Positions 1,801 to 56,005 are shown, counted from the first letter of the stretch. The stretch: 64,000 nt of DNA from IMGVR_UViG_3300030099_004448:174938-238937, one strand, 5' to 3'. The notes: generated by a model from the letters alone, not told the origin. Numbers and translations are program-made.

Positions 1801-2081
1801 ACATAATTTTACTGTTCTCGTTTTGTGTAGTCGCCTGGTTCATTGCCTCGGATGAGTCGGTTGCCGAATTCGTGGTATTAGTGGGAGAATACATAAAGAC
1901 AAAGACACGGATTTCTTGGTGGTGGATAACCAATAATCCAAGAAATCCCATTGTAAAATTCTTAATTAACAGAAGGTCTCACCGAGAGGCTGAGAAATTG
2001 CTCAAGATTATTAATGAAGAACGCAATAGTAATCCCAGTTCGATTGAACAGTCAGAGACTTCCCAAGAAAGCTCTGATTGA
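1791..2081 (+). CDS. hypothetical membrane protein
   Basis: Hydrophobic N-terminus, WWW..NPRNP motif. Confidence 0.65.
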   Translation: MELNIILLFSFCVVAWFIASDESVAEFVVLVGEYIKTKTRISWWWITNNPRNPIVKFLINRRSHREAEKLLKIINEERNSNPSSIEQSETSQESSD

Positions 2082-2724
2082 TATCGAAGGTAAAACCTTA
2101 ATTCAAAGAGTAGTCGGGCAGTGTCTTAAAACAGATCTGCCTGTGTATCTTATTACAGACAGTCAAGAAATTGCTGATTCCGTGTGTCCCCGTAGGACCA
2201 CGGTTCTTTTTTTAAGAGAAGAAGCATGCTCGGGAACAGAAAGAATTGCAAATGCAATTGATATGATTCCTGCGGATGGTGTTATTAATGTTCAAGGTGA
2301 TCAACCGTTCGTCGATCCTCAAGAGATCTTGGTCATGAATGAACATATGATTGCAAACAATTCAACGTATCCCGTGATCACACCATCTAAGATCTACGAG
2401 AGGGATCATCCATATGCTAAGGACCCGAACAAAGTTAAAGTTGTTTCTTCTAAGTATGGTCGTGCTCTTTACTTTAGCCGCCATGCCATCGGCGATGAGA
2501 GAGTTAGAATCCACATGGGAATTTATGGATACCGAAGATCTGCATTAGAAAGGTATCAATACATGAAACCAACTCCTTTAGAACAAAGAGAGAGGTTGGA
2601 ACAGTTGAGATTCCTTGAAAATGATATTTCTATCTACACTTATGAAACAGAAAGAGATCTGTTTTCTGTAGACACGCCACAAGACCTAGAACACGCTAGA
2701 GAGATAGCTTGGGAATACGACTAA
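2014..2724 (+). CDS. kdsB: 3-deoxy-manno-octulosonate cytidylyltransferase (CMP-Kdo synthetase)
   Basis: IP.RL.SQRLPKK.L, SGTERI, NVQGDQP, DPNKVKVV, ALYFSR, H.GIYGYR, E.LEQLR.LEN, VDTP.DL motifs. Confidence 0.93.
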   Translation: MKNAIVIPVRLNSQRLPKKALIDIEGKTLIQRVVGQCLKTDLPVYLITDSQEIADSVCPRRTTVLFLREEACSGTERIANAIDMIPADGVINVQGDQPFVDPQEILVMNEHMIANNSTYPVITPSKIYERDHPYAKDPNKVKVVSSKYGRALYFSRHAIGDERVRIHMGIYGYRRSALERYQYMKPTPLEQRERLEQLRFLENDISIYTYETERDLFSVDTPQDLEHAREIAWEYD

Positions 2725-3420
2725 GGGTATTTGGGAGTGTCGGTCTGAGAGTGCCCTAGAGGGATCTGGATGCACCTCAGCGAAGAATGCTTCTGCACCC
2801 CAGATTTTTGCACTCTGTGCAAGAGGTTGTGCATAGAACCAGTTACCACCAGTTGTAGATTCTCCACCTTCCTGGGTAGAGTGAGTTGAATCAAAACAAA
2901 CTTTGAATCCAGCACTCTTCAGTTTATGAATAGTTCGGAAGTCAACCACCAGGTTGTCATAACCGAAAGATGTACCACGTTCGCAGATATAAAAGTCTTC
3001 GCAACCATATGCTTCCATGTTCTCACCTAGGAGAATTGCCTGACGAGGGGACATAAACTGACCCTTCTTGACATTGACTAATTTACCAGACTCTGCAACT
3101 GCTTGAAGCAGGTCGTTTTGACGACACAAAAATGCAGGGACTTGGTATGCGTCTACATAGTTTGATAGGATCGCAACGTCTTGTGGTTCATGGACATCGG
3201 TGATGACTTTGTAACCTGCATCACGCAGTTTTTCAAAGATCTTGATTGCGAATCTAAGTCCATGTCCACGAAAACTCTTATGACTGGATCGGTTTGCCTT
3301 GTCAAAGGATGCCTTGAAGTAATAATCTACATCTTCGGGTAGATTTTCAGTAATAGTTTTCGCCACTAGAAATGCATCTTCTTCAGACTCTAGTAGACAT
3401 GGGCCTGCAAACAGCTTCAT
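2686..3420 (-). CDS. kdsA: Kdo-8-phosphate synthase
   Basis: AGPC..E, FKASFDKANRSS, TDVHE, PAFLCRQ, NVKKGQF, ERG.SFGY.NLVVD, FD.THS, EVHP.P..ALSD motifs. Confidence 0.95.
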   Translation of the reverse strand: MKLFAGPCLLESEEDAFLVAKTITENLPEDVDYYFKASFDKANRSSHKSFRGHGLRFAIKIFEKLRDAGYKVITDVHEPQDVAILSNYVDAYQVPAFLCRQNDLLQAVAESGKLVNVKKGQFMSPRQAILLGENMEAYGCEDFYICERGTSFGYDNLVVDFRTIHKLKSAGFKVCFDSTHSTQEGGESTTGGNWFYAQPLAQSAKIWGAEAFFAEVHPDPSRALSDRHSQIPLVVFPSYLSSVF

Positions 3421-3443
3421 TCTATGTTAAACTACTTGTACTA

Positions 3444-3452
3444 ATTATACCA
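3444..3452 (-). promoter_or_regulatory. extended -10 promoter for kdsA
   Basis: Minus strand TGG-TATAAT about 24 nt upstream of kdsA ATG. Confidence 0.5.
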
Positions 3453-3454
3453 CG

Positions 3455-4354
3455 ATGACACAGTATTTTCCAGAGTATGATCGACTAAAAGAATGTTGGG
3501 TAGGTCGTGCATACGATTCTTCGCTCGTAACTGATACATTTGTTAAAGATATCCTTGACGAAACAGAAGAGGATCTGTCAAACTTTAGTCAAATGTTGAG
3601 AGATCTGGGAGTAGAAGTTAAAAGACCGACTTATAAAAATCCCGATGTAACTCGGAAACCACAACTTCTACATGCACGGGACCATCTCCAGTATCTTAAC
3701 GGCAAACTTTATATTGGTCCAAGGTATGAAGATAATATTGCTGATTGGTTGGAGTTGCTTGATAATCGAACTCCTTTTGTCACTCTGGATAATCTATGCG
3801 CGCCTTCTGTAGTTCGTGCTGACAGAGTTTACTTTGATGCGGTATCATGGACACGCAAACGTTTTGAATATTTTCAACATGGGAATCCTGATCTGCCTTG
3901 TGTTTTTGAACGACTCTCTTCTCGCGATTTTAACATCGAACGTCATACAGATGGTGTATTCTGTGTAGTTAAAGAAGGTGTAATCATCTCCACCCCACAG
4001 GGACGTAACCTAGAGTATCTGTTTCCAGAGTGGGATATCTTATATCTTGATCAAAATACTCAGGATCTTAATGATATGTCGAAGACCAAGGGTAAGTTTA
4101 TTTGGTCTCCAGATCAGATCCCTGATGATTACAGAGATTGGGTAGGATATTCACCCGAAACTTTCTTTGATGTCAATGCACTTGCTGTTGATGAGAAACA
4201 CTTTATGTGTACTCGATACAATAAACAGGTGTTTGATTTCCTGAAGAAACATAAGGTGGAACCTATCATTGTTCCTTTCCGACATAGATATTTGTGGGAC
4301 GGCGGACTTCATTGTATGACGTTTGATTTTATTAGAGATGCATATCAACAGTAG
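3455..4354 (+). CDS. amidinotransferase family protein (glycine/inosamine-phosphate amidinotransferase-like)
   Basis: L.ECWVGR N-terminus, ARD, HTDG, FDVN, C-terminal GGLHCMT catalytic Cys motif. Confidence 0.85.
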   Translation: MTQYFPEYDRLKECWVGRAYDSSLVTDTFVKDILDETEEDLSNFSQMLRDLGVEVKRPTYKNPDVTRKPQLLHARDHLQYLNGKLYIGPRYEDNIADWLELLDNRTPFVTLDNLCAPSVVRADRVYFDAVSWTRKRFEYFQHGNPDLPCVFERLSSRDFNIERHTDGVFCVVKEGVIISTPQGRNLEYLFPEWDILYLDQNTQDLNDMSKTKGKFIWSPDQIPDDYRDWVGYSPETFFDVNALAVDEKHFMCTRYNKQVFDFLKKHKVEPIIVPFRHRYLWDGGLHCMTFDFIRDAYQQ

Positions 4355-5030
4355 TCTTTATAACGCCGAGATCATCTATGAACCTTGGCCCTATACAGTT
4401 ATTGATGATTTTTTCACCAAAGATACTTGGGAAAAGTTAAGTCAAATATCGAAGTATATTTTATCGGATACTCCCAATGAATATTTGAGAAACTCTATTC
4501 AAAAAGCAAAAGAAACTAAAGTTGGTGGAAAGGTATTCAATATCTGGGAACTCATTCAATGTGGAGTTCCCGAAGACATTGTTGAGTGTTATTGGGATGC
4601 ATGTCAAGAGATTTTAGAAAACAAGGAAAGAATTTACGGTCAGTTTCCTTCTCATAAACCTGATGTGAAGTCATTAATGAAACCATGTTTGAATTTAGAC
4701 TTCGAGGGAAACTGGTATGAACCGCATCCAGATTCTGACACAAAGGTTATTAGTCTCATTTGTTACCTTGATCCAGAGGAAAGTGAAGGTACTGCATTGC
4801 ATACTGACGGAACTCATGATAGTATGATACATAGACTGGATTGGAAACCAAACAGATGTACGGTTTTTTGTCCAAGTGATCACACTTGGCATTCTTTTCG
4901 ATGTCAATCCAAACATAGATTAGTTCTTGCTATGTTTGTTGAACGTTATATTATCAATAGAAAGAAAATTAAAGATAGACACACATTTTCTAACGGTAAA
5001 GTCGCTGAGTTCTGGTATGATTATGGCTAA
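4338..5030 (+). CDS. 2OG-Fe(II) oxygenase
   Basis: HPD...H..R facial triad pattern (PHPDS...TWHSF...HRLV); EPWPY.VIDDF N-terminus. Confidence 0.8.
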   Translation: MHINSSLYNAEIIYEPWPYTVIDDFFTKDTWEKLSQISKYILSDTPNEYLRNSIQKAKETKVGGKVFNIWELIQCGVPEDIVECYWDACQEILENKERIYGQFPSHKPDVKSLMKPCLNLDFEGNWYEPHPDSDTKVISLICYLDPEESEGTALHTDGTHDSMIHRLDWKPNRCTVFCPSDHTWHSFRCQSKHRLVLAMFVERYIINRKKIKDRHTFSNGKVAEFWYDYG

Positions 5031-5253
5031 AATTCAAGTCGGAGATTACGTCAAGTACAATGGATGTACAAAAGAACAAATCCGTTGGGGTAATAATGAT
5101 GATCCAAGTGATCAACTTGCGATTAATGGTATATATTATGTGAATAAAGTAGATATTAGGTCATCTCATACTAAAATTTCCCTGCGTGGCATTCAGGGTA
5201 GATTTAATAGTGTATGCTTTGATATCTTGAGTGGGGGATATGATTATAAATGA
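5023..5253 (+). CDS. hypothetical protein
   Basis: 76 aa from ATG 5023. Confidence 0.7.
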   Translation: MAKIQVGDYVKYNGCTKEQIRWGNNDDPSDQLAINGIYYVNKVDIRSSHTKISLRGIQGRFNSVCFDILSGGYDYK

Positions 5254-6215
5254 AAAAGATTCGTAGGGTAATTCAAAAAGACCAGAATCTTATGCACTTG
5301 ACCTGGATGGTCAATAATATTTGTCAGAATAAGTGTGCCTATTGTATTCCTGGATTGAATAGTGGTAAAGGACACCATTATAAGTGGGAAAATGCAAAGA
5401 GATTCATAGATATTCTTTTTGAAAGATATCCTAAGATTCATTGTTCTGTTACTGGTGGAGAACCAAGTATCAGTCCTTTTTTTCCAGAACTAGTTCAACG
5501 ATTTGTTGATGCTGGACACACCATAGGAACAACTACGAATGGATTCAAACCTGTAGAGTATTGGAAAGATATTTCCAAGAATCTTAGTTATGTTTGTTTT
5601 TCATATCATCCAGAACAACCAACAGAAGATTTTCTAGACAAAGTTCTTTACTGTTCACTTAATACAATGGTGACTGTAAGAATCATGATGCACCCTAGAC
5701 ACTGGGATCATTGTGTAGAAGTTTATAATGATATTAAAGATATCCCAACAATTTTTGTAGAACCTGTTCGATGTCTTGATTGGGGTAGCGTTGATAGAAC
5801 GGTTCACTTATACGATGAAAACCAACTTGCATGGTTTAGAGATGCAGAGTCTTCTCTTGGTCATGAAAAATACTTAGAAACTGATGAAAAGTTTAATAGA
5901 ACTCCAGACATTACTGCCGATTTCGAGATGGACGATGAAACTATCGAGAAAGGTACAAATACTCTGGATTACATTAACTCAGGACAAACAAACTTTAAGG
6001 GGTATGTTTGTGAGGTTGGTTTGAAGAGTTTGTTTATTGATCACTCTGGTGAAATCTTCTTGGGTAACTGTTGTATTGGTGGACCACAGGGTCACATGGA
6101 TGAACCAGATGAAATTGCATGGCCTACTAAGAGAGTAATTTGTTCAAAACATATCTGTCACTGTTCTATTGATGTCAATATAAATAAGTGGACTAGGGGA
6201 TATTTTAGAAAATGA
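5250..6215 (+). CDS. radical SAM protein with C-terminal Cys cluster (SPASM/twitch-like)
   Basis: CQNKCAYC, TGGEP, TTNG, SYH; C-terminal C..G..S..I...G....C and C....C.C. Confidence 0.88.
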   Translation: MKKIRRVIQKDQNLMHLTWMVNNICQNKCAYCIPGLNSGKGHHYKWENAKRFIDILFERYPKIHCSVTGGEPSISPFFPELVQRFVDAGHTIGTTTNGFKPVEYWKDISKNLSYVCFSYHPEQPTEDFLDKVLYCSLNTMVTVRIMMHPRHWDHCVEVYNDIKDIPTIFVEPVRCLDWGSVDRTVHLYDENQLAWFRDAESSLGHEKYLETDEKFNRTPDITADFEMDDETIEKGTNTLDYINSGQTNFKGYVCEVGLKSLFIDHSGEIFLGNCCIGGPQGHMDEPDEIAWPTKRVICSKHICHCSIDVNINKWTRGYFRK

Positions 6216-6550
6216 GAGTTGACAAACCCTGGGGATGGTATAAAGATCTTGAGAGAACACCTAATCTTGTTATAAAAAAGATTTACATCAAACCTTTCTC
6301 TAAGTTTTCACTTCAAAAACACTCTGAAAGGGAAGAATTCTGGTACATTATCAATGGGTATGGTAAACTGACCCTTGATGATAAGTTTCATACAGTTGGA
6401 CCTGGAGATTCTTATAAAATTAAAAAAGAACAAATTCATAGAATGGAAGCCTATGCAGATGGTGTAACTTTCGTGGAGGTACAGAGTGGAGAATGCAGAG
6501 AAAACGACATCTACAGAATCGAAGACGACTACGGAAGAGAAAACTCTTGA
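6212..6550 (+). CDS. mannose-6-phosphate isomerase type II-like cupin
   Basis: KPWG, SLQKH..REE.W, HR, EVQ.G...E.DI.RIEDDYGR. Confidence 0.85.
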   Translation: MRVDKPWGWYKDLERTPNLVIKKIYIKPFSKFSLQKHSEREEFWYIINGYGKLTLDDKFHTVGPGDSYKIKKEQIHRMEAYADGVTFVEVQSGECRENDIYRIEDDYGRENS

Positions 6551-7476: not shown

Positions 7477-7665
7477 ATGTACGAAGAACTAAATTGTTTT
7501 GAGGAAGCACTTAAACACTTTGGCACTCGGGTTGAAATTATCTGTGCTTTAGAACTTGGTGGCAGACTCCCCTCTGAGGCTGCCTATCAGATGATCAAAG
7601 ATGAGATGAAGGAACTCAAAAAGTGCCGTAAACAGTTTAACAAAGCCGGCGAGTGCGATAAATAA
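7477..7665 (+). CDS. cyanophage/cyanobacterial hypothetical protein
   Basis: 62 aa; FG.RV.II.ALE.GG....E.AY..IK pattern. Confidence 0.75.
   Translation: MYEELNCFEEALKHFGTRVEIICALELGGRLPSEAAYQMIKDEMKELKKCRKQFNKAGECDK
7658..7664 (+). promoter_or_regulatory. T4-like late promoter (representative; similar (A/C)TAAATA at 8227, 19743, 22488, 32512, 41761, 47161, 48630, 55362, 57115, 59345 on +, and 30661, 31572 on -)
   Basis: ATAAATA shortly upstream of structural/late ORF starts. Confidence 0.7.
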
Positions 7666-7684: not shown

Positions 7685-8227
7685 ATGGCTGCGGAAATTA
7701 CTTCCACTGGTATTCAATTCAGTGATTCTACGCAAGTAAACAGTAGGGGTTGGATGACCCCAGATGGAACTTCAATGTTTTTCTATCAGTCATCCGCCCC
7801 TACTCATTGGGTAAAGAGCACCTCTCATGATAATAAGATGCTTAGAGTTGTTAGTGGAAATGGTGGAGGATCTGGAGGTAGTGTTAGTTTTTCTGATTTT
7901 AGTAGTAGAAGTTTTACATTTCCATATTCATCCAATAGTTCAACAAATAATAAAACTCTAAGTTCAAACCAAATTCCTTCCCATACACATAGTAATATGG
8001 GAACTAAACTTACTTTCTTTCCACAAAATCCAAACGGAACTTATAATGGTGGAGACGTAAGAAGAGGTCCTGGTTGGACTAGGAACACTAATAGTACTGG
8101 TGGAGTTTCTGGACCTTCACAACATAGTCATCCGTTCAGTTCATCTGGTACTAGTCCAAGTATTTCCTGTAATATCAATGTTCAGTATATCGATATCATT
8201 CAGTGCAACTTCGATATCGACGCATAA
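7685..8227 (+). CDS. short tail fibre/tail-collar-like protein (paralogue 1)
   Basis: FYQSSAPT.W, L...QIPSHTH, HSH motifs; Ser/Gly rich; late promoter. Confidence 0.7.
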   Translation: MAAEITSTGIQFSDSTQVNSRGWMTPDGTSMFFYQSSAPTHWVKSTSHDNKMLRVVSGNGGGSGGSVSFSDFSSRSFTFPYSSNSSTNNKTLSSNQIPSHTHSNMGTKLTFFPQNPNGTYNGGDVRRGPGWTRNTNSTGGVSGPSQHSHPFSSSGTSPSISCNINVQYIDIIQCNFDIDA

Positions 8228-8267: not shown

Positions 8268-8786
8268 ATGGCAGCAGAAATAGATGGAACTGGTATTGTC
8301 TTTAGTGATTCCACTCGACTAGACTCTAAGTATGATATTTTTGCACAAGGAACTTCTTCCATATTCTTTCAGTCGTCTGCTCCAACGGGGTGGTCAAAAA
8401 GCACTTCCAACAATAATAAAGCGCTTAGAGTTGTAACTGGATCTGGTGGAGGTACTGGTGGATCAAATACTTTTACTAGTGCATTTCCATCTTCAAAACC
8501 AGTTTCTGGTAACTTCCCTATTTCTGGAACGGTTGGTAACCACACTCTAACGTCAAACCAACTTCCGAGTCATACCCATGCTAATGGCGGTGCAGTTACA
8601 TTGAGTCCTGGTGGCGGAGACGTAAGATCTGGTGGTGGGTGGTCAAGAAGCACTCCAGGCACTGGCAACAATACTACTAATGCATCTTCACATAACCATG
8701 GATTTAGTAGTGGTAGTGCAAGTTTTAGTGCAAATATCAATCTTGCCGTGCAATATATTGATGTGATAGTTTGTAGTTTCTCCTGA
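8268..8786 (+). CDS. short tail fibre/tail-collar-like protein (paralogue 2)
   Basis: FFQSSAPTGW, HTLT..QLPSHTH, HNH; clear paralogue of 7685-8227. Confidence 0.7.
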   Translation: MAAEIDGTGIVFSDSTRLDSKYDIFAQGTSSIFFQSSAPTGWSKSTSNNNKALRVVTGSGGGTGGSNTFTSAFPSSKPVSGNFPISGTVGNHTLTSNQLPSHTHANGGAVTLSPGGGDVRSGGGWSRSTPGTGNNTTNASSHNHGFSSGSASFSANINLAVQYIDVIVCSFS

Positions 8787-8802: not shown

Positions 8803-9162
8803 ATGATGAGATTCAAAAAAGAAGAACCAGGTAATTGGTGTCCTCTGATCAAAAAAGATTGTGTTGAACACAAGTGTGCATGGTATATGCATATTCGTGG
8901 AATGGATCCTAATACAGGACAAGATATCGATCACTGGGGATGTGCAGTAGGTTGGATGCCCACTCTCCTCATTGAAAATTCTCAACAACAAAGACAGACT
9001 GGTGCTGCTGTGGAATCTTTCCGTAATGAGACTGTTAAAGAGTCTCAGAAGAATCGTACTATGTACGAGGATATGATGAAACAACAATCAATTATGCCAG
9101 TTCAAGTTAATCCACTTGAAAACCTTTTGGAGGCCTCTGATGAATCTGACAGTAATAATTGA
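8803..9162 (+). CDS. phage hypothetical protein (Cys-containing N-terminus)
   Basis: CPL.KKDC....CAW...CA..W.P.LLIENSQQQRQT. Confidence 0.75.
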   Translation: MMRFKKEEPGNWCPLIKKDCVEHKCAWYMHIRGMDPNTGQDIDHWGCAVGWMPTLLIENSQQQRQTGAAVESFRNETVKESQKNRTMYEDMMKQQSIMPVQVNPLENLLEASDESDSNN

Positions 9163-9784
9163 AGATAAAGCCATCTACGTTGATGGTTTTGTTGTACAAC
9201 CTGCTGATATGAGTTGGTTTAATCCCGATGATTATGAAAGAGAGGTTAATGCAATTCAGTGGGAAGAAGATTGTGGTGAGATTGAATACGTAGAAGGACC
9301 TCCCACTCCCATCGATAACATCGACTTTTTGAAAGATGTTATCACTGTCCATCAACTTGCAAGAGAAAAATTTGAGCAAGATCAGGAAGCTTATAGAAAA
9401 GAATGTGAACTCAGTTCTCTTGTCGAATACAATGAAGATGATCCCAAACTAGAGTTTGTGGATTATGATGAAACTCGCGATATTGACGAAGATAAACTAA
9501 ATGATATTCTGGACGAAATTGATTTTGATCTAGAAGATGAACCTGATAGAGGATATGCTGAACTAGTCCATGCAGATGATGAAGATGGTCCAGAATCTGC
9601 AGAAGATATACTTGGAATTGGGTCATTAGATCAGGAACCAGTGCCCCAAACCGAGGATAATGATATAATGCATGAAGATCTCCGTGATGCTCTTGATACT
9701 CAAGAGGAAAGTTCATACGAGATGGAAGAGGAAGTAGAAAACCAAATCTACTATGATATTGAAGAATTACTCAAAGAGATATGA
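9140..9784 (+). CDS. hypothetical protein, possible fibre assembly chaperone with acidic tail
   Basis: GGAGG RBS; YVDG...AIQW....GEIEY then D/E-rich C-terminus. Confidence 0.7.
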   Translation: MNLTVIIEDKAIYVDGFVVQPADMSWFNPDDYEREVNAIQWEEDCGEIEYVEGPPTPIDNIDFLKDVITVHQLAREKFEQDQEAYRKECELSSLVEYNEDDPKLEFVDYDETRDIDEDKLNDILDEIDFDLEDEPDRGYAELVHADDEDGPESAEDILGIGSLDQEPVPQTEDNDIMHEDLRDALDTQEESSYEMEEEVENQIYYDIEELLKEI

Positions 9785-10929
9785 TTCCTGAACTCCAAGT
9801 CAATGATTATACTGTAGTCAGAAACTTCATTGATCAGGAAAGGGCAATAAAACTGGGTTATGAGTTCATGAACTTCTGTGAAGAACATGATGCTGCGGGT
9901 GATAATCAGGCAGTAAACTCAAACTCAGTTCATAATTACTTACCTTTTCTTGAGTTACTTTGTGAAAAAACACCTGAGGTGAGTAAGATTGTTGGAGAAA
10001 CAGTCTTGCCCACCTATGTTTATTCTAGGGTGTATAAGAATGGTTCTGACCTAAAACGACATACTGATAAGGATGAGTGTGAGATTTCTCTTACACTCAA
10101 TTTGTGTGCAGATAGACCTTGGAAAATATGGATTGAAACTCCTAGAGGAGAAAGGAGATCTGTGATGCTTGCTCCTGGAGATGCCATGTTCTATCATGGA
10201 TGTAATGCACCACACTGGAGAGATAACTATACAGGAACATACTACACTCAAGCATTTCTACATTATGTGTATAGTAGAGGTGAACGTGTTAACTCTTACT
10301 TCGACAAGAATCGACCAGGTGTAAACAACTTTGAACAGAAATCACCAAAACTTTTAGTAGAACCAGGAAGAGGAGAATCAATGATCAGTGATTATATCAT
10401 GGTAATCAAGGGACTTGTGCCTGAAGATCTGTGCGATGATATTCTAAAAGAATTTCCAGAAGACTCTGTTTATTGGGATCCTTCTACCGTGGGTGCTGGT
10501 GATGTCCGTGAAGATATCAGAAGTTGTAATACGATTGGATTATCTAGACTTCCACATCAAAATTTGGTGTATGAAAATCTAGACTCTAGAATGTTTGAGT
10601 GTGCAGCAGAAGCTATCAGACAATATAGAGAACGTTGGCCAGGTGTAGAAACAGAAATCGATACTGGTTACGATCTACTTAGATATAGAACTGGAGAGTT
10701 CTACACTCAACATACAGACTCATTCAAAGAACAACAAAGATCTGTAACTTGTTCTTTTCATCTCAATGATGACTATGAAGGTGGTGAGTTTGCCTTTTTC
10801 AATAGAGAAAAGGTATATAAATTTGAGAAAGGTGATGCGATTCTTTTCCCATCAAACTTCATGTTCCCGCATGAAATCTTGCCTGTAACTTCTGGAACAC
10901 GCTACTCTATTATTACTTGGTATGTCTGA
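9781..10929 (+). CDS. two-domain 2OG-Fe(II) oxygenase fusion
   Basis: Two HxD...H sets: RHTDK...PHWR and QHTDS...PHEILPVTSGTRYS. Confidence 0.85.
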   Translation: MIPELQVNDYTVVRNFIDQERAIKLGYEFMNFCEEHDAAGDNQAVNSNSVHNYLPFLELLCEKTPEVSKIVGETVLPTYVYSRVYKNGSDLKRHTDKDECEISLTLNLCADRPWKIWIETPRGERRSVMLAPGDAMFYHGCNAPHWRDNYTGTYYTQAFLHYVYSRGERVNSYFDKNRPGVNNFEQKSPKLLVEPGRGESMISDYIMVIKGLVPEDLCDDILKEFPEDSVYWDPSTVGAGDVREDIRSCNTIGLSRLPHQNLVYENLDSRMFECAAEAIRQYRERWPGVETEIDTGYDLLRYRTGEFYTQHTDSFKEQQRSVTCSFHLNDDYEGGEFAFFNREKVYKFEKGDAILFPSNFMFPHEILPVTSGTRYSIITWYV

Positions 10930-11695
10930 TAAACTTAAAGGTCTCCCAATGGTATATTGGTTGAGTTGTGATATTGATAGGATTGCTCGTATGGAATCCC
11001 AGTTTGAAAAGTGGGGTATCCAAAATCAAAAATTTTGGTTCGGTAATCTAAAACCAGATCATTATGAAGTATGGAAAGATAAAGTATTCAAACCAGAATT
11101 AATTCACCCAAAAGATTATCTATCCACATGTATTACGATCTCTACACTTGAGATGATTCGTTATTGGTTGGAGAATACCAATGACAAATATCTGATTCTA
11201 ATGGAAGATGATTATGATTTAGATCTGATCGAGTATTGGCATTTCGATTGGAAAACTCTGATGAAGAATCTTCCTTATGATTGGGATTGTATTCAGTTGG
11301 GATTTGAATCGCAGGAATATGTTTCTTTCTTCCTTCATCCAAAGACAAGACATAGTGCCTTTGGACCTGTAATGATCAATAGGTGGTTTGCGGAAAAACT
11401 ACTTCGTATTCATACAGTTCAGGGAAAATACTTTTTCCTCCGAAGATTTGCGGGATATCCTGGAATTCGTTCACTTGATGTTGATCACTTTTTTGGATTT
11501 GTTGGTAGAACATACCAGTTACCACTTATCACTCAAGATCCTTACCTAGATAAAGTGCCAAAGAAACATCACTTTGTCTGCAGAGATCTTTACTATGATT
11601 GGTGGGAAAACGAGAGAGATAAGTTTACTCTTAAAGAATTCTTCACTTATGGTAAACCCAACGACGGTGACATGACCAAAATTGTTGATCTATGA
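10922..11695 (+). CDS. glycosyltransferase family 25-like
   Basis: R...M..QF, LILMEDD, WDCIQLG. Confidence 0.78.
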   Translation: MSDKLKGLPMVYWLSCDIDRIARMESQFEKWGIQNQKFWFGNLKPDHYEVWKDKVFKPELIHPKDYLSTCITISTLEMIRYWLENTNDKYLILMEDDYDLDLIEYWHFDWKTLMKNLPYDWDCIQLGFESQEYVSFFLHPKTRHSAFGPVMINRWFAEKLLRIHTVQGKYFFLRRFAGYPGIRSLDVDHFFGFVGRTYQLPLITQDPYLDKVPKKHHFVCRDLYYDWWENERDKFTLKEFFTYGKPNDGDMTKIVDL

Positions 11696-12459
11696 AGTTA
11701 TCCAATCTACCTCCCATCTATTATCTCAACCTTCAGGAGAGGGAGGAGAGACGAGAATACATGGAGAAACAATTTAAGAAATATGAGATCCGCAAGTGGA
11801 GGCGCTGCAACGGATCCATTTTTGGGGAGGAAAATTTTCCTGAGTGGAAAAAGTTAGTTCTGGATTCTCAATTTAAGACTCAAAAGAGATTTTATAGTGT
11901 ATTATTGAATCGATCTGAGATGATCGCCAACTTTCTTTTTGACCTAGATTCTGATGTTGTTCTTCTATTAGAGGACGACTTGTCTTTTCATACGGAGAGA
12001 TATTTAAACTTTGAGTGGGAAGAGTTTATCGAACGTCTACCCCATAATTGGGACTGTGTTCAACTTCATATCATCGGTGAGAAGTTCATGCCCTTGACAC
12101 TTTCTCCTTGGTCTGTGAACAATCATAGTGCTGCAGCAATCCTAATCAATAAAAGATATGCAGATAAGTATGTGAATATGTTCATGGAAAATGGTAAGTG
12201 GAGATTTTTGAATAACTACGGGTATAGTAATGATCTTCCCGAGTATCATTATCACTCTGCAGACTTCATCCCATATCAAGTGGGTACGACTTATTCTTTC
12301 CCTATGTTTGTGACCAACTCTAAGTTTGAGAGTGATGGCTCTGGAATCAATGCTTTGGCTAAACGATCTGACGCAACTGTGTTAGAATGGTGGAAGAATA
12401 ATGAAAAGAGTTTGGAAGAAATGATGTATCTTGATCGTCCTATGTTTGCCCAACTATGA
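11692..12459 (+). CDS. glycosyltransferase family 25-like
   Basis: IYYLNL..R.ERR.YM..QF, LLLEDD, WDCVQL. Confidence 0.8.
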   Translation: MKLSNLPPIYYLNLQEREERREYMEKQFKKYEIRKWRRCNGSIFGEENFPEWKKLVLDSQFKTQKRFYSVLLNRSEMIANFLFDLDSDVVLLLEDDLSFHTERYLNFEWEEFIERLPHNWDCVQLHIIGEKFMPLTLSPWSVNNHSAAAILINKRYADKYVNMFMENGKWRFLNNYGYSNDLPEYHYHSADFIPYQVGTTYSFPMFVTNSKFESDGSGINALAKRSDATVLEWWKNNEKSLEEMMYLDRPMFAQL

Positions 12460-13298
12460 AACTGAAAGGTCTTCCGACTTTATATTATCTGAATCTAGAC
12501 GAACGACCAGATCGTAGGGAATACACAGAACTACAATACGATGAGTTGGGGATCACTAACTTCAAGAGATTTTCTGGTTCTGAGTATAAATTTGATAATT
12601 TTTTAGATTGGAAAGAACGGGTAATATTGAATGATATGTCTGATTGTGTCAGATGGAGACAACATATCATTGAAATTGCAATAGCAATCTCTACTCTCGA
12701 TATGATTAAACATTGGTTGACTACGACCAATGAGAAACATCTTCTACTAATGGAAGATGACTACGATTATCGATTCGTCAAATATTGGCATTTTGATTGG
12801 GAATATTTGATGAATCATATTCCTTTTGATTGGGACTGTATCCAACTTGGGTTTGAAAACGAACATGAGATTCCATGTTTTCTTCATCCAATCAGATCAC
12901 ATCATGATTATGGTCCTATTCTAATTAATAGACCATATGCAGAGAAGTTGATGAGACTTTTTACTGTTGGTGATCAATACGATCTTTCCCAGAGGATTCA
13001 AAACTATAAGTGGGGAAAGATGTTAGATATGCCCAATAGGACTATTGATTATTTCATGTGTCACTCAGGTAATACATACTGTATGCCTTTGATTAGTGTT
13101 AATCCTCATATCGGGAGTTATGAACAAAACTTTGTAAGAACTGATCGACCAGATCTTGATCTTGCCAGAAAGGCATATAATAAGTGGTGGACCGTCATGC
13201 GTGATGAGTATACTCTAGAAGAGTTTTTCATGTACGGTAAACCAAATGATTATGTGATCACTCCAGAAGAACCTGACATCGACGATTATTATGTTTGA
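12456..13298 (+). CDS. glycosyltransferase family 25-like
   Basis: YYLNLDERPDRR, LLMEDD, WDCIQLG. Confidence 0.8.
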   Translation: MKLKGLPTLYYLNLDERPDRREYTELQYDELGITNFKRFSGSEYKFDNFLDWKERVILNDMSDCVRWRQHIIEIAIAISTLDMIKHWLTTTNEKHLLLMEDDYDYRFVKYWHFDWEYLMNHIPFDWDCIQLGFENEHEIPCFLHPIRSHHDYGPILINRPYAEKLMRLFTVGDQYDLSQRIQNYKWGKMLDMPNRTIDYFMCHSGNTYCMPLISVNPHIGSYEQNFVRTDRPDLDLARKAYNKWWTVMRDEYTLEEFFMYGKPNDYVITPEEPDIDDYYV

Positions 13299-13881
13299 AC
13301 ATGTGAGACAGTTTGAAGAACAAGTTGCAGACTTCTATGGTGCTCCATATGCAGTCGCAACAGATTCTTGTACTCATGCAATCGAACTCTGTCTTAGGTT
13401 GCACTATCCATTGGTAGTTCCGCAGATACCTAAACATACATACCTTTCTGTTCCAATGACTTTCATGAAGTTGGATATTCCTTTTCTTTTGACGGATCGT
13501 AAGTGGTGTGGTTGGTATCCCATCGCTAATACTAATATTATCGATGCTGCGGTTTATTGGGAAGAAGGTGGTTATATACCAGACAAGAATATGTGTTTAA
13601 GTTTTCAGTTTAAGAAACATCTGAGTTTGGGTCGAGGTGGGATGATTCTTACCGATAATGAAAGAGACTATCATCAACTACAGAGAATGGTGTATGATGG
13701 TAGAGATATGACTAAACCTTGGGCAGAACAAGATATTACTACGGTTGGATATCATTACTACATGACACCAGAGACTGCTATCGAGGGTATTCGTAAGTTC
13801 CCCATGGCAAAAGACATGCAACCTAAATCCTGGTCTTGGGAGGATTATCCAAATCTATCAAAACTCACTGTATTTCAATGA
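13291..13881 (+). CDS. DegT/DnrJ/EryC1/StrS PLP sugar aminotransferase, short form
   Basis: FE..VA.F.GAPYAVATDSCT.A, IIDAA, SFQFKKHL..G.GG. Confidence 0.85.
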   Translation: MFEHVRQFEEQVADFYGAPYAVATDSCTHAIELCLRLHYPLVVPQIPKHTYLSVPMTFMKLDIPFLLTDRKWCGWYPIANTNIIDAAVYWEEGGYIPDKNMCLSFQFKKHLSLGRGGMILTDNERDYHQLQRMVYDGRDMTKPWAEQDITTVGYHYYMTPETAIEGIRKFPMAKDMQPKSWSWEDYPNLSKLTVFQ

Positions 13882-14384
13882 AACACATAGAACCAGATTG
13901 GAATATCGATCAGTTCAAACAACTGAACTATACCTTAGCGAGTCACAACGATCCGTTAGTTGTCAATGAATACTTGTGGGCTGGACATAATAAGTCCAAG
14001 ATGACTATCTACAAGTATCATGAACCGAATCCCATGCCAGAAAGTATGGAATATATTCGAGATCAGTTCTCATTTTGGTCTGATGTTTGTGTTGCAGTAA
14101 ATCACTTCAAACCTGGTCAATACCTACCTATGCACAAAGACTTGTATGGGAGATATGCTAGAATGACTGGTGCATATCCAGCATTTATCATGAGATGTAT
14201 GGTTATGCTTGAAGATAGTTTTCCTGGTCAAATTTTGCAGATCAGTGATGAGTGTTATGGTAAATGGTCTGCGGGCGATTGTTTCTATTGGGATTATGAT
14301 ACCCCACATGCGTTTTATAATATGAGTATGATTGATAGATACGCAGTTCAAGTTACAGGTGTTTGCAATGCATACCCCATGTGA
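13878..14384 (+). CDS. cupin/2OG-Fe(II) oxygenase (AspH-like)
   Basis: PGQYLPMHKD...TPHAFYN...R; start reassigned to ATG overlapping the DegT stop. Confidence 0.7.
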   Translation: MKHIEPDWNIDQFKQLNYTLASHNDPLVVNEYLWAGHNKSKMTIYKYHEPNPMPESMEYIRDQFSFWSDVCVAVNHFKPGQYLPMHKDLYGRYARMTGAYPAFIMRCMVMLEDSFPGQILQISDECYGKWSAGDCFYWDYDTPHAFYNMSMIDRYAVQVTGVCNAYPM

Positions 14385-15144
14385 TATTCCTAATTTAGAT
14401 ATTCATATTACTCATAGGTGTAATTTTTCTTGTGATAGTTGTTCTCACTTTTCTAATCACAAGTTTACCGATGAGGTAAAATTTGATGATTTCAAAGACT
14501 GGGTAGATCTTTGGAAAAATAGACTCAATCCTGCCAAGATTGGTATATTAGGTGGAGAAACATTCTTAAATCCCAGAGTTGCTGAGTATTGTGAATATAC
14601 AAGAAAGTGTTTTCCAAATTCTAGGATAGAACTAGTAACAAATGCATTTATCTTGAAGGATATATCTGAAACTTTGATTAAAAATGATATAGTTCTTGCA
14701 GTATCTGTTCACCACAACAGCCCAGAATATAAGAAAACTCTCGCAAAGAACAAAAAAATTATTGAGAGTTGGGGTGTTAAGGTAGAATATTGGAATAGTT
14801 TCTTGAAATGGCAAAAAGTTTATAAAGGATATGGAGAAAATATTGAACCCTATGAAGACAATGATCCAGAAAGTAGTTGGAATAACTGCCCTACTGGACA
14901 GAACTGTTTCCAACTTCATGAAGGTAAGATGTGGAAGTGTGCGCCACTCGCGTTCTTGCCAATGATGAATAAAAAATATAAGCTGTCTGAAAAGTGGGAT
15001 AGATACTTAGAGTACGTTCCTCTGTCATCAGATTGTACGACTGAAGAACTACAAAAGTTTATTAATCGTGGTGCAGAATCTTATTGTTCTATGTGTCCAT
15101 CTAAACCACATTATTTTATGAAAGATATGCCTTATGGGAAGTAA
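14368..15144 (+). CDS. radical SAM protein
   Basis: CNFSCDSC, LGGE, TN; C-terminal C...C..C Cys cluster. Confidence 0.87.
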   Translation: MHTPCDIPNLDIHITHRCNFSCDSCSHFSNHKFTDEVKFDDFKDWVDLWKNRLNPAKIGILGGETFLNPRVAEYCEYTRKCFPNSRIELVTNAFILKDISETLIKNDIVLAVSVHHNSPEYKKTLAKNKKIIESWGVKVEYWNSFLKWQKVYKGYGENIEPYEDNDPESSWNNCPTGQNCFQLHEGKMWKCAPLAFLPMMNKKYKLSEKWDRYLEYVPLSSDCTTEELQKFINRGAESYCSMCPSKPHYFMKDMPYGK

Positions 15145-16096
15145 AAATGAGTGGGGTCAACTCCGAAAAGTAATTGTAGGTCACGCTGAGGGTGCGAGAG
15201 TTCCTGAAATGGACAGGAGTTTGCGTCTAATCAACTATGCGGATCGTGATGATGTTTCGGATGTTCCGTGTGGATTGTATCCACAACAGGTTATTGATGA
15301 AGCAAATCAAGATCTAGAATTACTGGTAGATCTATTTGTTCAACTCGGAATTGCAGTCGGTAGACCTCACTATGAACCCACACCATACTATAATTACTGC
15401 CCTAGGGATCTTGTATTTGTCCATGGTGATAAGACTTACGCAACTCCCTCCCCACTGAAGGCAAGACGATTCAATTTTGGATCTATTTCCCATCATTTTA
15501 ATCAGTTAATTCCTATCACACCTTCATACTCTATGAGTTTGTATGATGATCACTGTGTGGGGAACAAAGACATTCTTGCATTGACTGAACATCATCCTGC
15601 ATTTGATGCCGCAAATATCATTAGAGCGAACGATGACATCCTCTATTTGGTGTCTAACAGTGGAAACAAGGCGGGTGCTCAGAAGTTACAATCACTCCTC
15701 CCTGACGCGAAGGTACACCTATTAGAGGGTGTTTACAGTTATATGCACATTGATACTACAGTTGCATTTTTGAGGGAGGGATTGCTTCTTGCAAATCCAG
15801 AAAGAATCACAGATAGAGACCTTCTACCTGGACCATTCAGGGACTGGGACATCATATGGTGTCCAAAGCCTGTTGACATTGGTTATTACCCTGGTTATAA
15901 TCATGCTTCAGAGTGGATAAATATGAATTTATTCAGTATTAACCCAAATCTGGTTGTACTGGAAGAACATCAAGAACCAACCCGAAAAGTTCTGGAGAAA
16001 CATGGAATTGAATGTGCTATGTTGCCCATGAGACAGTCCAGAACCTTAAGTGGTTGTTTCCACTGTGTTACCTTAGATCTAGAAAGAGATGACTGA
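15134..16096 (+). CDS. amidinotransferase (scyllo-inosamine-4-phosphate amidinotransferase StrB1-like)
   Basis: S.NEWG.L..VIVG, NYCPRD, FDAAN, SGN..G, HIDTT, W..MN, GCFHCVTLD. Confidence 0.88.
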   Translation: MGSKNEWGQLRKVIVGHAEGARVPEMDRSLRLINYADRDDVSDVPCGLYPQQVIDEANQDLELLVDLFVQLGIAVGRPHYEPTPYYNYCPRDLVFVHGDKTYATPSPLKARRFNFGSISHHFNQLIPITPSYSMSLYDDHCVGNKDILALTEHHPAFDAANIIRANDDILYLVSNSGNKAGAQKLQSLLPDAKVHLLEGVYSYMHIDTTVAFLREGLLLANPERITDRDLLPGPFRDWDIIWCPKPVDIGYYPGYNHASEWINMNLFSINPNLVVLEEHQEPTRKVLEKHGIECAMLPMRQSRTLSGCFHCVTLDLERDD

Positions 16097-16316
16097 ACCA
16101 ACTAAAATTCATCCATCGGGACTTAACATCATAGAGAACTCCAATGGATCCTATTCTTTCGAGTGGGATTCTAAAGACGAACGTTGGAGTTGGATGAATG
16201 ATTTGACGGACGAAGAGATTAAGGTTATTATTGAGGCTGCAATCGAGTACGAAGCTACTCGTCCAGTTGACGTTGAAACTATTGAAGAGGTCTACGATGA
16301 ATCAGAAGACGTATGA
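16089..16316 (+). CDS. hypothetical protein
   Basis: 75 aa, acidic. Confidence 0.7.
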   Translation: MTEPTKIHPSGLNIIENSNGSYSFEWDSKDERWSWMNDLTDEEIKVIIEAAIEYEATRPVDVETIEEVYDESEDV

Positions 16317-20791: not shown

Positions 20792-21691
20792 ATGTCAGTT
20801 TCTGTTATTTGTGCGTGTAGGGATAGAATCAAACCTTTGACGATATCCCTTTCTTCTTGGTTATTGTTTGATCAGATTAAAGAGATAATCATCGTTGACT
20901 GGTCTTCTAAAGAGGAGATCGGTCACTTGACAAAACTAGATGACAGGATCAAGGTGATTCGGGTCAATGATGAAGAGTTCTTCAATCAACCCCAACCCTT
21001 GAATCTTGCTGCGTCTATGGCTACAGGAGAGTTTATCCTGAAGTTTGATGCTGACCATATTCTGAACCCTTACTACAATTTCTTTCATGTCAACGGTATC
21101 TTTGACGAGGAATCGTTTGTAAGTGGTGTGAACGACAAGGTGGGGGATGAGTGTCTCCATCCTATCTGGGGACTCTTGTACGTCCGCCGAGAGCACTTTG
21201 AGAAGGTCGGTGGCTACAATGAGAAGATGGGTAAGTACTATGCGGTAGAAGATGATGAAATCTCCATCAGACTCCAGGCCGCGGGTTATACGTGTTGCCC
21301 TATCGATATGCGTGTTCTGAGTGCAATCCACATCCCACATAATGATGAGGTCAGAATCTCTAACTTTGAGGGATATGCAAAGGATCGTGAGTTCCTGGAT
21401 GTCTTTGAGAAACAGACTGGACAGTGGTACAAAGATCGCATTGATGAAGTGATCGCCCCTGGTATTATGGGTATCCTCAACAGCAAAGAACTGAAGAAGA
21501 CCAAGTTCAAGTATCTGACTGAACAACACAAAGAGAAGAACATGGAAATCTTCGGTCTCAAAGAATATATCGACAAGTCTCGATATGACTATGGTGGTAT
21601 TGACTTTGACCAACCAAACTTCAGGTTGTATGACTGGAAGACTAAAGAAGTAGAACCTAATTACTTTATTGCTACGAAGAAAAAGAAATGA
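20792..21691 (+). CDS. glycosyltransferase GT2/GT7C-like (paralogue 1)
   Basis: VSVI, IIVDWSS, DAD, GGYNE...Y..EDD..RL. Confidence 0.83.
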   Translation: MSVSVICACRDRIKPLTISLSSWLLFDQIKEIIIVDWSSKEEIGHLTKLDDRIKVIRVNDEEFFNQPQPLNLAASMATGEFILKFDADHILNPYYNFFHVNGIFDEESFVSGVNDKVGDECLHPIWGLLYVRREHFEKVGGYNEKMGKYYAVEDDEISIRLQAAGYTCCPIDMRVLSAIHIPHNDEVRISNFEGYAKDREFLDVFEKQTGQWYKDRIDEVIAPGIMGILNSKELKKTKFKYLTEQHKEKNMEIFGLKEYIDKSRYDYGGIDFDQPNFRLYDWKTKEVEPNYFIATKKKK

Positions 21692-22491
21692 GTGTATCGG
21701 TGATATCTGCCTGTATGAACAGGGTGGATCCGTTATCCATTTCTATTCAATCGTGGGCAATGAATGACCAGATTGATGAAATTGTTTTTGTTGACTGGTC
21801 ATCAGAAAAATCCTCGGAACATCTCACTAAGATCAGTCCAAAGATCAAACGTGTATATGTTCCTGATCAAAAATACTTTAATCAACCTCAACCACTGAAT
21901 CTTGCATTTAAGATTTCAAGTGGCGATCAAATCTTGAAACTGGATTCGGATACAATCCTCAATCCATACTTCAATTTCTTTGATGAATTTAGTGTTGATG
22001 AGTTTAGTTTCGCCTCTGGTTTGTATTCCCCAGGACACAAGTGTTTGCGTCCAATCTGGGGAACTATTTTTGTCAATAGAGAAAACTATGCAAAAGTCGG
22101 TGGATATAATGAAGCAATGGGAGAGTTTGTTGCTTGGGAAGATGATGAGATTGTAAATCGTTTCTTGCTCTCAGGACTAGAACATCGTAGAATCCAAGCG
22201 TCGAAGAATACTATCTTCGCCATGCCCCATGACAATAAGAAGAGAATCGAGAACTTCAAAGCTTATAATGAAAACAAAGAAATTGAAAAGAAGGTAAGAA
22301 CTCTTATGGAAAAGAAGGGGTATGATATTGAAGATAATATCGACTATGCAATTCTTTCTCACCACACAATTCTGAATAACAAGAAATATAAACGATATAA
22401 AGGTGACAGTTATTATGCGGAACCAGTTGTAGACTGGGACGTAACACAAGTTGATGAACAGAACTATGTTTGTCAAAAAATCATCCACTAA
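21688..22491 (+). CDS. glycosyltransferase GT2/GT7C-like (paralogue 2)
   Basis: VFVDWSS, FNQPQPLNLA, DSD, GGYNE...WEDD. Confidence 0.83.
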   Translation: MSVSVISACMNRVDPLSISIQSWAMNDQIDEIVFVDWSSEKSSEHLTKISPKIKRVYVPDQKYFNQPQPLNLAFKISSGDQILKLDSDTILNPYFNFFDEFSVDEFSFASGLYSPGHKCLRPIWGTIFVNRENYAKVGGYNEAMGEFVAWEDDEIVNRFLLSGLEHRRIQASKNTIFAMPHDNKKRIENFKAYNENKEIEKKVRTLMEKKGYDIEDNIDYAILSHHTILNNKKYKRYKGDSYYAEPVVDWDVTQVDEQNYVCQKIIH

Positions 22492-55359: not shown

Positions 55360-55389
55360 TAATAAATAAATTATCTCGTGATTTAATAT

Positions 55390-56004
55390 ATGACTAGAAC
55401 AGAAGTGTCATGTGAGTATCAAGATTTCATCGGGACTTACAGAAATGTATATCCCGATGATTTTTGTGAGCACTTGATCAATTTTTTTGAAGAAATAGAA
55501 AGCGGTACTAATTGTATTATCCAAAATAGACAAGAAGAAGATTCCAGAATGCCTAAGTGCGATAAGGATGATAAATTCATGTTTTTGGACTTAGCTGCTC
55601 TCCAAGTTCCTCGGTGGAGAGATAAAGCTACGATTAACATGATATGGAAGGGACTTCAAGTTTGTTTCGATCAATATGTTAAAGAGTACGACCATCTTAA
55701 AGATAATAATATATCAGGACATGCATTAAAAATGCAAAGAACTGATCCTGGTCAAGGTTATCATATTTGGCATTATGAAAATAATGGATACGAAGATAGA
55801 CATAGGTGTCTAGCATTCTCAATTTATCTCAATGATATTGAAGATGCAGGTGAAACCGAATTTCTCTATTTGAAAAGAAGAATTAAACCAGAGAGGAATA
55901 TGTGTACTATTTGGCCTGCTGGTTTTACCCATGTTCATCGAGGTAATGTTGTTCATGGAACTAAATCTAAATATATTATAACTGGTTGGTTTTATTACAT
56001 CTAA
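55390..56004 (+). CDS. 2OG-Fe(II) oxygenase (prolyl-hydroxylase-like)
   Basis: GYHIWHYE, YLND...GETEF, WPA.FTH.HRG, KYI.TGW. Confidence 0.87.
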   Translation: MTRTEVSCEYQDFIGTYRNVYPDDFCEHLINFFEEIESGTNCIIQNRQEEDSRMPKCDKDDKFMFLDLAALQVPRWRDKATINMIWKGLQVCFDQYVKEYDHLKDNNISGHALKMQRTDPGQGYHIWHYENNGYEDRHRCLAFSIYLNDIEDAGETEFLYLKRRIKPERNMCTIWPAGFTHVHRGNVVHGTKSKYIITGWFYYI

Positions 56005-56005
56005 G

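Follow-up and report, generated by a model that had tools for sequence, protein, structure and literature searches.

Among the closest described parallels to the system reported here is the streptidine branch of streptomycin biosynthesis, in which an alcohol is oxidised by a dehydrogenase, the product is transaminated by the DegT-family enzyme StsC, and the amine is amidinated from arginine by StrB1. The same order of chemistry is proposed for a gene cluster of IMGVR_UViG_3300030099_004448:174938-238937, a stretch of 64,000 nucleotides (hereafter the window) that forms the final 64 kb of a 238,937-bp record rated complete by CheckV. The genome carries psbA/psbD, talC, thyX and tRNAs, it is closest, among cultured phages, to S-SCSM2R, a T4-like phage of Synechococcus, and the virus is a marine T4-like cyanomyovirus of 239 kb. 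The cluster consists of seven plus-strand open reading frames (ORFs; 10922-16096) with neighbours overlapping by 4-17 nt, which encode three GT25-like glycosyltransferases (GTs), a minimal DegT-type pyridoxal phosphate (PLP) enzyme (mini-DegT), a small Fe(II)/2-oxoglutarate (2OG) oxygenase, a radical SAM enzyme and a StrB1-like L-arginine amidinotransferase. An earlier sequence-only reading of this DNA had named the same seven overlapping genes, with which the ORF calls agree, and its enzyme identities were largely borne out by family, profile and structure comparison. The cluster belongs to a near-gapless block of 12 genes (largest internal gap 16 nt), composed successively of fib2 (start 8268), two small ORFs, a double 2OG oxygenase, the seven enzymes and a 75-aa ORF (end 16316). 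The conserved unit is formed by the mini-DegT, the small 2OG oxygenase and the amidinotransferase (the trio), and the locus is regarded as a viral island for glycan tailoring, in which the amidination step is without precedent and the aminotransferase is unusually minimal. With slightly better than even confidence, the 12-gene block is proposed to build and tailor a glycan, in which the trio makes a guanidino sugar, the GT25 enzymes place it, and a virion protein is the likeliest acceptor.

There are clear differences between this locus and the streptidine branch. They relate to the lack of a cyclitol synthase and an inosamine kinase in the phage, the putative oxidant (a small 2OG oxygenase), the length of the aminotransferase (196 residues), the neighbours (GDP-/UDP-sugar enzymes and GT25) and the viral nature of the genes. 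A second parallel is provided by the GDP-perosamine and Ara4N pathways (GMD and Per; Ugd, ArnA and ArnB): in structure, the mini-DegT comes closest to GDP-perosamine synthase and ArnB, GDP-mannose 4,6-dehydratase (GMD) and UDP-glucose/GDP-mannose dehydrogenase (UGDH) are recurrent neighbours, and bacterial mini-DegT genes are located in O-antigen-like loci. In contrast to these pathways, the phage amine is probably amidinated instead of acylated, the mini-DegT possesses no C-terminal domain, and the keto group seemingly comes from the 2OG oxygenase where GMD is not adjacent. Virus-encoded GTs and sugar-tailoring enzymes likewise serve the glycosylation of the mimivirus fibril, the chlorovirus capsid and the mycobacteriophage capsid and tail; giant viruses also place a P4H-type oxygenase beside a collagen-like protein, and mimivirus R655 is the closest, and the sole, solved relative of the GTs described here. 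To our knowledge, no amidinotransferase occurs in those glycosylation systems, and virion glycosylation by the phage is a proposal.

Among phages, the same neighbourhood with the same families is found in the 'LPS gene' islands of P-SSM2, S-SCSM1 and S-SCSM2R; ORF301-310 of the last are orthologues with 41-76% amino-acid identity. The large T4-like cyanophages are among the most abundant marine viruses, and these islands have been unexplained for twenty years. Three of the S-SCSM2R orthologues were filed as 'antibiotic synthesis genes' of unclear role, the first in cyanophages (PMC12801897, December 2025); the trio, the fusion and the bacterial context presented below are newly described. An exchangeable radical SAM/amidinotransferase module was also noted in Campylobacter phages (PMC2853527). 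In CP220/CPt10 this module places an amidinotransferase homologue (25% identity, full length) beside five radical SAM genes and GT-A genes, so that only the amidinotransferase and generic radical SAM/GT-A genes are held in common; no mini-DegT or small-oxygenase homologue was detectable in it by profile. In the literature, no characterised viral pathway of this kind and no report of the trio, the fusion or a minimal DegT family was found. The statement of the sequence-only reading that no phage pathway of this type has been characterised thus holds, with homologous genes listed as uncharacterised in S-SCSM2R (PMC12801897) and the Campylobacter phages (PMC2853527).

Through comparison of related loci, the association of the three trio genes was examined in 80 loci from IMG/VR fetched by the amidinotransferase and five metagenome loci (L003-L007), with all ORFs classified. 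The counts refer to 72 loci with enough flank and to genes within 6 kb of the amidinotransferase, and a lineage is defined as an amidinotransferase cluster at 85% identity (14 clusters). The mini-DegT is found near the amidinotransferase in 67/72 loci, the small oxygenase in 65/72, both together in 63/72, and a GT25-like gene in 57/72. The trio is present in at least 10 of the 14 lineages with the gene order shuffled between them, and the association is therefore not mere inherited synteny. The neighbourhood conservation suggested earlier as a check is thus observed for the trio, whose genes do not assort independently. Around it, the accessory genes vary by lineage and include carbamoyltransferase, UGDH, GMD, sulfotransferase and further oxygenases, as well as B12-type and SPASM-type radical SAM genes. 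The picture is that of a glycan-tailoring island with one constant cassette.

The amidinotransferase (15134-16096, 320 aa) is homologous to StrB1 (1bwd) over residues 4-318 (E 1.6e-62), whereas HsvA, AGAT and SxtG are matched at E 1e-27 to 1e-32, some 100 bits lower. Asp92, Asp158, His205, Asp207 and Cys311 do not vary among 19 diverse homologues, including that of CP220, and align with the StrB1 motifs. The assignment to the StrB1 type made from the sequence is upheld by this full-length homology and by the kept catalytic Cys, His and Asp. A Pfam search of the protein at E 0.01 gave no match. Relatives are numerous: public metagenomes contain more than 3,600 of them, and no fewer than 224 contigs of IMG/VR carry one. 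It could be argued that the enzyme acts on a small amine (glycine, lysine or a polyamine) apart from the GTs, the neighbourhood being a mixture of auxiliary metabolic genes. After StrB1, its best solved relatives are indeed HsvA, which acts on polyamines, and then glycine amidinotransferase; in relatives, an AdoMet decarboxylase is encoded a few kb downstream, and the mini-DegT is missing from some loci. This explanation is nevertheless considered improbable in view of the bit-score lead of StrB1 over HsvA and AGAT, the adjacency of mini-DegT and oxygenase kept despite the shuffled gene order, and the GMD gene that is adjacent instead in the exceptional loci.

An unusual component of the proposed guanidino-sugar pathway is the mini-DegT (13291-13881, 196 aa). 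It matches PF01041 at 56.8 bits (cut-off 19.8) in two stretches (profile positions 24-58 and about 166-245), and aligns with the solved sugar aminotransferases 4zwv and 7b0m at residues about 35-110 and 135-255. What is absent, compared to these, are the N-terminal ~30 residues, ~50 internal residues and the entire C-terminal domain, so the two-domain architecture of fold-type I enzymes (~360-400 residues) is not present in the 196-aa protein. The model (pLDDT 95) folds onto the large domain of GDP-perosamine synthase, BtrR, ArnB and AHBA synthase and spans only ~40% of each solved target (TM score by target 0.32-0.42). T28, Y51, D85 (the position of the Asp that binds the pyridine N), S104 and K109, the last being the PLP lysine of an SFxxxK motif, are invariant in 19 mini-DegT sequences with a mean column identity of 62%. 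The family has 216 representatives at E <= 1e-30, and the short form is the rule, since a length of 196-220 aa is shared by the majority of the 150 best representatives. As the short form is highly conserved and the PLP residues are invariant, the gene is not a pseudogene. The DegT aminotransferase named in the sequence-only reading is thereby confirmed in family, with the correction that it is a truncated, minimal form of 196 residues that keeps its PLP residues.

Natural fusions of the mini-DegT were also identified. P0128 is a protein of 397 residues that joins a mini-DegT (24-225) to the small oxygenase (233-396, E 2.6e-53); it occurs on two contigs, and the next gene belongs to the GMD family. 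In P0255 the mini-DegT is fused to a GNAT acetyltransferase, acetylation being what usually happens to a sugar amine once it is formed. There are also contigs whose mini-DegT frame carries an N-terminal HNH/AP2 or endonuclease VII homing-endonuclease domain (P0214, P0251), which suggests insertion of a homing endonuclease beside the mini-DegT gene. Two further proteins were considered and set aside: a 364-aa protein of variant loci (L006, L056, L058), tried as an aminotransferase, is unrelated to the mini-DegT profile, and gp085 of CP220, a small protein preceding the amidinotransferase of that phage, is unrelated to the profiles of both mini-DegT and oxygenase.

The small oxygenase (13878-14384, 168 aa from ATG; a TTG at 13836 gives a longer frame) shows the characteristic features of a minimal Fe(II)/2OG enzyme; (i) invariant H86, D88 and H144 and a nearly invariant R154; (ii) a double-stranded beta-helix fold (model pLDDT 94); (iii) structural matches to PiuC-type 2OG oxygenases (Z 14.2) and to the sugar epimerase SnoN (Z 12.8), with P4H, PHD2 and AspH at Z 11-13. 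The Pfam family Asp_Arg_Hydrox is matched at 17.5, under its cut-off of 22.6. The arrangement of mini-DegT loci bears on the role of this enzyme: where GMD is adjacent the small oxygenase is absent, and where the oxygenase is adjacent GMD is absent. Since GMD makes a 4-keto sugar, this mutual replacement fits the oxygenase as the keto-forming partner in the phage cassette.

The mini-DegT is also encoded in cellular genomes of Marinimicrobia, Alphaproteobacteria, Bacteroidota, Bdellovibrio and Prochlorococcus single cells, where genes of 139 aa and 176 aa form a repeated module with the mini-DegT and GMD, without an amidinotransferase. This module adjoins GT11, WecA-type GT4 and Wzy_C genes (O-antigen-like loci) or sits in a cellular Prochlorococcus island. 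The 139-aa and 176-aa partners are unrelated to the oxygenase profile; as candidates for the missing parts of a split DegT they gave nothing in Pfam. In 201 genomes of the host family, the amidinotransferase is found in five, the mini-DegT in four and both in none, and of five mini-DegT-bearing genomes only that of Bdellovibrio has the amidinotransferase. The amidinotransferase is thus largely a viral addition.

The identity of the modified compound was approached through the complete genome. No 2-deoxy-scyllo-inosose synthase (PF01761) or inositol-phosphate synthase (PF01658) was found in its 238,937 bp, with positive controls. The further sugar islands of the phage carry KdsA/KdsB, GMD-like, UGDH, GT10 and GT11 genes, a GMD-like enzyme and a UGDH being encoded in one at 151-161 kb. 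Because there is no cyclitol synthase and the recurring neighbours are GMD and UGDH, a nucleotide sugar is likelier than a cyclitol; of the guanidino-sugar or cyclitol proposed from the sequence, the former is therefore favoured and the latter loses ground. The same data bear on the proposal, made for the S-SCSM2R homologues, that the product is a free aminoglycoside-like secondary metabolite or 'antibiotic'. This proposal builds on the occurrence of StrB1, DegT/AHBA synthase and SPASM-type radical SAM enzymes in antibiotic pathways (PMC12801897), and the best solved relative of the amidinotransferase is in fact the streptomycin enzyme. A free antibiotic is disfavoured by the missing cyclitol synthase and by a GT family of the wrong kind, GT25 (lipooligosaccharide (LOS)/collagen type) not being known from aminoglycoside pathways. 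With the bacterial homologues located in surface-polysaccharide loci and no export or self-resistance gene seen, we regard this explanation as very unlikely.

The three GTs, encoded directly upstream of the trio, are paralogues: GTa (10922-11695, 257 aa), GTb (11692-12459, 255 aa) and GTc (12456-13298, 280 aa). They match phrog_2835 at E 1e-28 to 1e-38 and carry an EDD motif (E100-D101-D102) that is invariant across 26 GT sequences. In Pfam, only GTb matches GT25 (PF01755), at 16.5 bits and below the cut-off of 24; by profile comparison with the Pfam-passing GT25 of the same genome, the hhalign probability is 100 (E 5.7e-40), and PF01755 is carried by 11-99% of the members of their Atlas neighbour clusters. 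Despite the Pfam scores, the three GT25 enzymes of the sequence-only reading are thus supported by profile comparison and the acidic motif. Bacterial GT25 enzymes act on LOS cores, and the family also includes collagen hydroxylysine galactosyltransferases. Just upstream, where a double 2OG oxygenase had been noted, a 382-aa protein (9781-10929) with an H-T-D motif visible in each half and a P4H-type C-terminal half (2OG-FeII_Oxy_3) was found; its gene is present in 44/72 related loci.

With respect to the acceptor, a virion protein is favoured by late-promoter-like motifs, by the fibre-like genes of the block and by the lack of glycan export genes. T4-type late promoters, also used by cultured cyanophages, have ATAAATA as their core. 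In the window this motif lies 25-40 nt upstream of fib1, fib2, structural genes and the genes around a collagen-like protein, and 7/12 of its occurrences fall within the 3.7% of the window located 11-45 nt upstream of starts (P 6e-8); the strict 8-mer TATAAATA shows no enrichment. The fibre-like genes are fib1 (7685-8227, 180 aa, ATAAATA at 7658) and its paralogue fib2 (8268-8786, 172 aa, ATAAATA at 8227), both on the plus strand and both rich in Ser/Gly/Thr/Asn. The Pfam and PHROGs searches of both gave no match; the short fibre genes proposed here earlier are retained on their Atlas (language-model) neighbours, which are the tail-fibre family, Gp10_C and Collar. A second candidate acceptor is encoded at 55390-57118, where a P4H-type 2OG oxygenase (204 aa) directly precedes a 370-aa collagen-like G-X-Y protein (GNP and GNK triplets), both downstream of ATAAATA at 55362; by sequence, the two resemble a prolyl/lysyl hydroxylase and the protein it acts on. 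Purified virions of S-SCSM2R were found to contain a 2OG oxygenase and an amidinotransferase paralogue (PMC12801897). That marine phages decorate fibre- or collagen-like virion proteins with a guanidinium-sugar glycan, made by the trio on a nucleotide sugar or on an attached one, is put forward tentatively, as a proposal we would place well short of even.

The same chemistry may instead serve the host envelope, with cyanobacterial lipopolysaccharide (LPS), LOS or another surface glycan remodelled for receptor masking or superinfection exclusion. We take this to be possible but doubtful. The action of bacterial GT25 enzymes on LOS cores agrees with it, as do the mini-DegT homologues in O-antigen-like loci and in the Prochlorococcus island, the KdsA/KdsB genes close by, and the further sugar islands of the genome. 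Such genes have moreover been read as envelope-directed (PMC12801897), in line with the classical view of the 'LPS genes' of large T4-like cyanophages. On the other hand, no Wzx flippase, Wzy polymerase or WecA-like polyprenyl-phosphate transferase is encoded in the complete genome. Apart from an NDH-1 subunit and PsbA/PsbD, the genome encodes no multi-pass membrane protein, so the phage has no glycan export route of its own. The block also shares late-type motifs with structural genes, and a late surface change is of little gain to a strictly lytic phage.

A third acceptor, DNA, would make the glycan or guanidino sugar a hypermodification of the phage genome. Positively charged DNA modifications are common in phages, a 2OG oxygenase with a GT-A enzyme follows the logic of base J, and CP220 and Flavobacterium phage immuto, which carry distant homologues, have fully modified DNA, but through unrelated deazaguanine pathways. 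DNA is disfavoured as a target, because no hydroxymethylase (PF00303), Tet_JBP (PF12851) or C5-methyltransferase (PF00145) was found in the complete genome, the Tet_JBP search being made without a positive control. The double oxygenase is of the P4H type, and the block stands behind late-type motifs, not among the early genes of DNA metabolism; we see hardly any chance for this target. Of the three targets named from the sequence (virion proteins, LPS and DNA), virion proteins are accordingly favoured, LPS comes second and DNA is unlikely.

For the trio with a virion acceptor, the following pathway is proposed. The small Fe(II)/2OG oxygenase would introduce a keto group by oxidising a carbon of the sugar; the mini-DegT, as judged by its family, retained PLP residues and context, would aminate this group, and the amidinotransferase, as judged by its family and catalytic residues, would move the amidino group of L-arginine onto the amine, yielding a guanidino sugar. 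The substrate is most likely a GDP-/UDP-activated hexose derivative or a sugar already on the acceptor, and probably not a cyclitol. The three GT25 enzymes would transfer sugars to the acceptor, on which the double P4H-type oxygenase may create hydroxyls. The acceptor, the least certain step, is most likely a virion protein, either the fibre-like proteins of the block or the collagen-like protein of the window. The core logic of the earlier reading, namely keto formation, DegT amination and StrB1-type amidination, is strengthened by the linkage of the trio across lineages and by the natural oxygenase/mini-DegT fusion; the order oxygenase, mini-DegT, amidinotransferase is inferred.

Several points weigh against this pathway and its virion acceptor. 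The variant loci L006, L056 and L058 pair the amidinotransferase with GMD and have no recognisable aminotransferase. The oxygenase might come into play only once the other two enzymes have acted, or might have arginine as its substrate. The late-promoter interpretation is drawn from a short motif and from knowledge of T4 and cultured cyanophages, and the synteny with fibre-like genes is found mainly in related cyanophage contigs, which are not independent evidence. The 23 virion proteins of S-SCSM2R do not include the homologue of the cluster's own amidinotransferase (PMC12801897). We also know of no guanidino sugar in a glycoconjugate.

If the trio does turn a hydroxyl into a guanidinium, it would define a glycan modification that is new and permanently positive in charge, and would provide a compact enzyme set for guanidino sugars, which are chemically near to zanamivir-type compounds and aminoglycosides. 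With a virion acceptor, it would further introduce a sugar modification new to glycoconjugates, and the mini-DegT would be the smallest known functional DegT-type aminotransferase. The trio offers a handle on what cyanophages glycosylate, a question made testable by the cultured relative S-SCSM2R on Synechococcus WH7803.

The radical SAM enzyme (14368-15144, 258 aa from ATG; alternative TTG start at 14332) passes PF04055 at 44 bits (cut-off 29.5), with an invariant CX3CX2C motif (C18, C22, C25). Five more invariant Cys at the C-terminus suggest an auxiliary cluster. Among solved structures it is matched best by 7wzv (E 1e-10), deposited under an uninformative name, and the match to BtrN is weak (E 0.04, core only). 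A radical SAM gene of this type lies near the amidinotransferase in 18/72 related loci. The sequence-only reading had made a BtrN-like radical SAM enzyme the former of the keto group; given its low frequency and the weak BtrN match, this part does not find support, that role being assigned to the 2OG oxygenase, or to GMD in variants. The radical SAM enzyme is an accessory, an optional extra tailoring step outside the core. Radical SAM proteins of ~400-440 aa with a SPASM domain at the N-terminus (residues ~6-100), before the core and thus in the reverse of the usual order, recur beside the trio in viruses and Bdellovibrio (G000:C1:147585-150327, outside the window; L071:7073-8275; L046:11784-13028; L082:2791-4119; L116:6657-7958).

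The remaining genes of the block are two small ORFs (8803-9784), encoding a 119-aa Cys-containing and a very acidic 222-aa protein and syntenic with the block in most cyanophage-like loci, and the 75-aa ORF (16089-16316), which shares 8 nt with the amidinotransferase gene and is found behind the cluster in 56 related loci; all are on the plus strand. The region is not an assembly artefact, because 85-100% of its sampled words are present in 14 marine DNA runs from several studies. A megablast search of the region against 50,697 phage records gave no match, its relatives being found at the protein level only. The Rfam scan of the window revealed tRNAs only, and the wcaG RNA annotated in S-SCSM2R falls outside the equivalent of the window. 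Contigs of seawater RNA-seq from four libraries cover most of 10300-16250 at 90-99% identity and come from relatives; they are compatible with transcription in these, and with DNA carry-over possible they are not counted as proof of it. A perfect sigma-70 consensus (TTGACA, 17 nt, TATAAT; 12/12) is located at 15873-15901, within the 3' end of the amidinotransferase gene and ~190 nt before the following small ORFs, for which it may be an early promoter; scans for sigma-70 promoters and terminators showed no excess over shuffles.

In many related contigs (L003-L005, L030-L063; e.g. L003:9814-11310), a NodU/CmcH-type carbamoyltransferase of 498-548 aa follows the amidinotransferase, in most of them with a GT25-like gene between the two, and the same pairing is found in a Chloroflexota metagenome-assembled genome (L118). 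In bluensomycin and streptomycin these two kinds of group, carbamoyl and amidino, serve as alternative decorations. Elsewhere in the genome, the stretch between a GT24-like gene and psbA (G000:C1:165664-170162, outside the window) holds five ORFs of 223-284 aa in tandem, four of them distantly similar to ORF270 of S-SCSM2R and one to ORF268. Within the window, two tandem GT2-family genes just after thyX (20792-22491) are homologues of S-SCSM2R ORF310, which in that phage sits directly behind the amidinotransferase.

A second, diverged module with the same ingredients is located upstream of the cluster (2014-6550). It comprises a KdsB-like cytidylyltransferase, KdsA (2686-3420, minus strand), a 299-aa amidinotransferase paralogue (3455-4354) with the catalytic Cys kept, and further a 2OG oxygenase, a radical SAM enzyme (5250-6215) and a cupin of the mannose-6-P-isomerase type. 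With ORF266 of S-SCSM2R, a protein of the virion proteome of that phage, the paralogue shares 96.6% identity. Compared to S-SCSM2R, the protein identity of KdsA and the paralogue (2686-4354) is 97-99%, whereas that of the flanking genes is 35-70%, which suggests a recent exchange of this segment between the two phage lineages.

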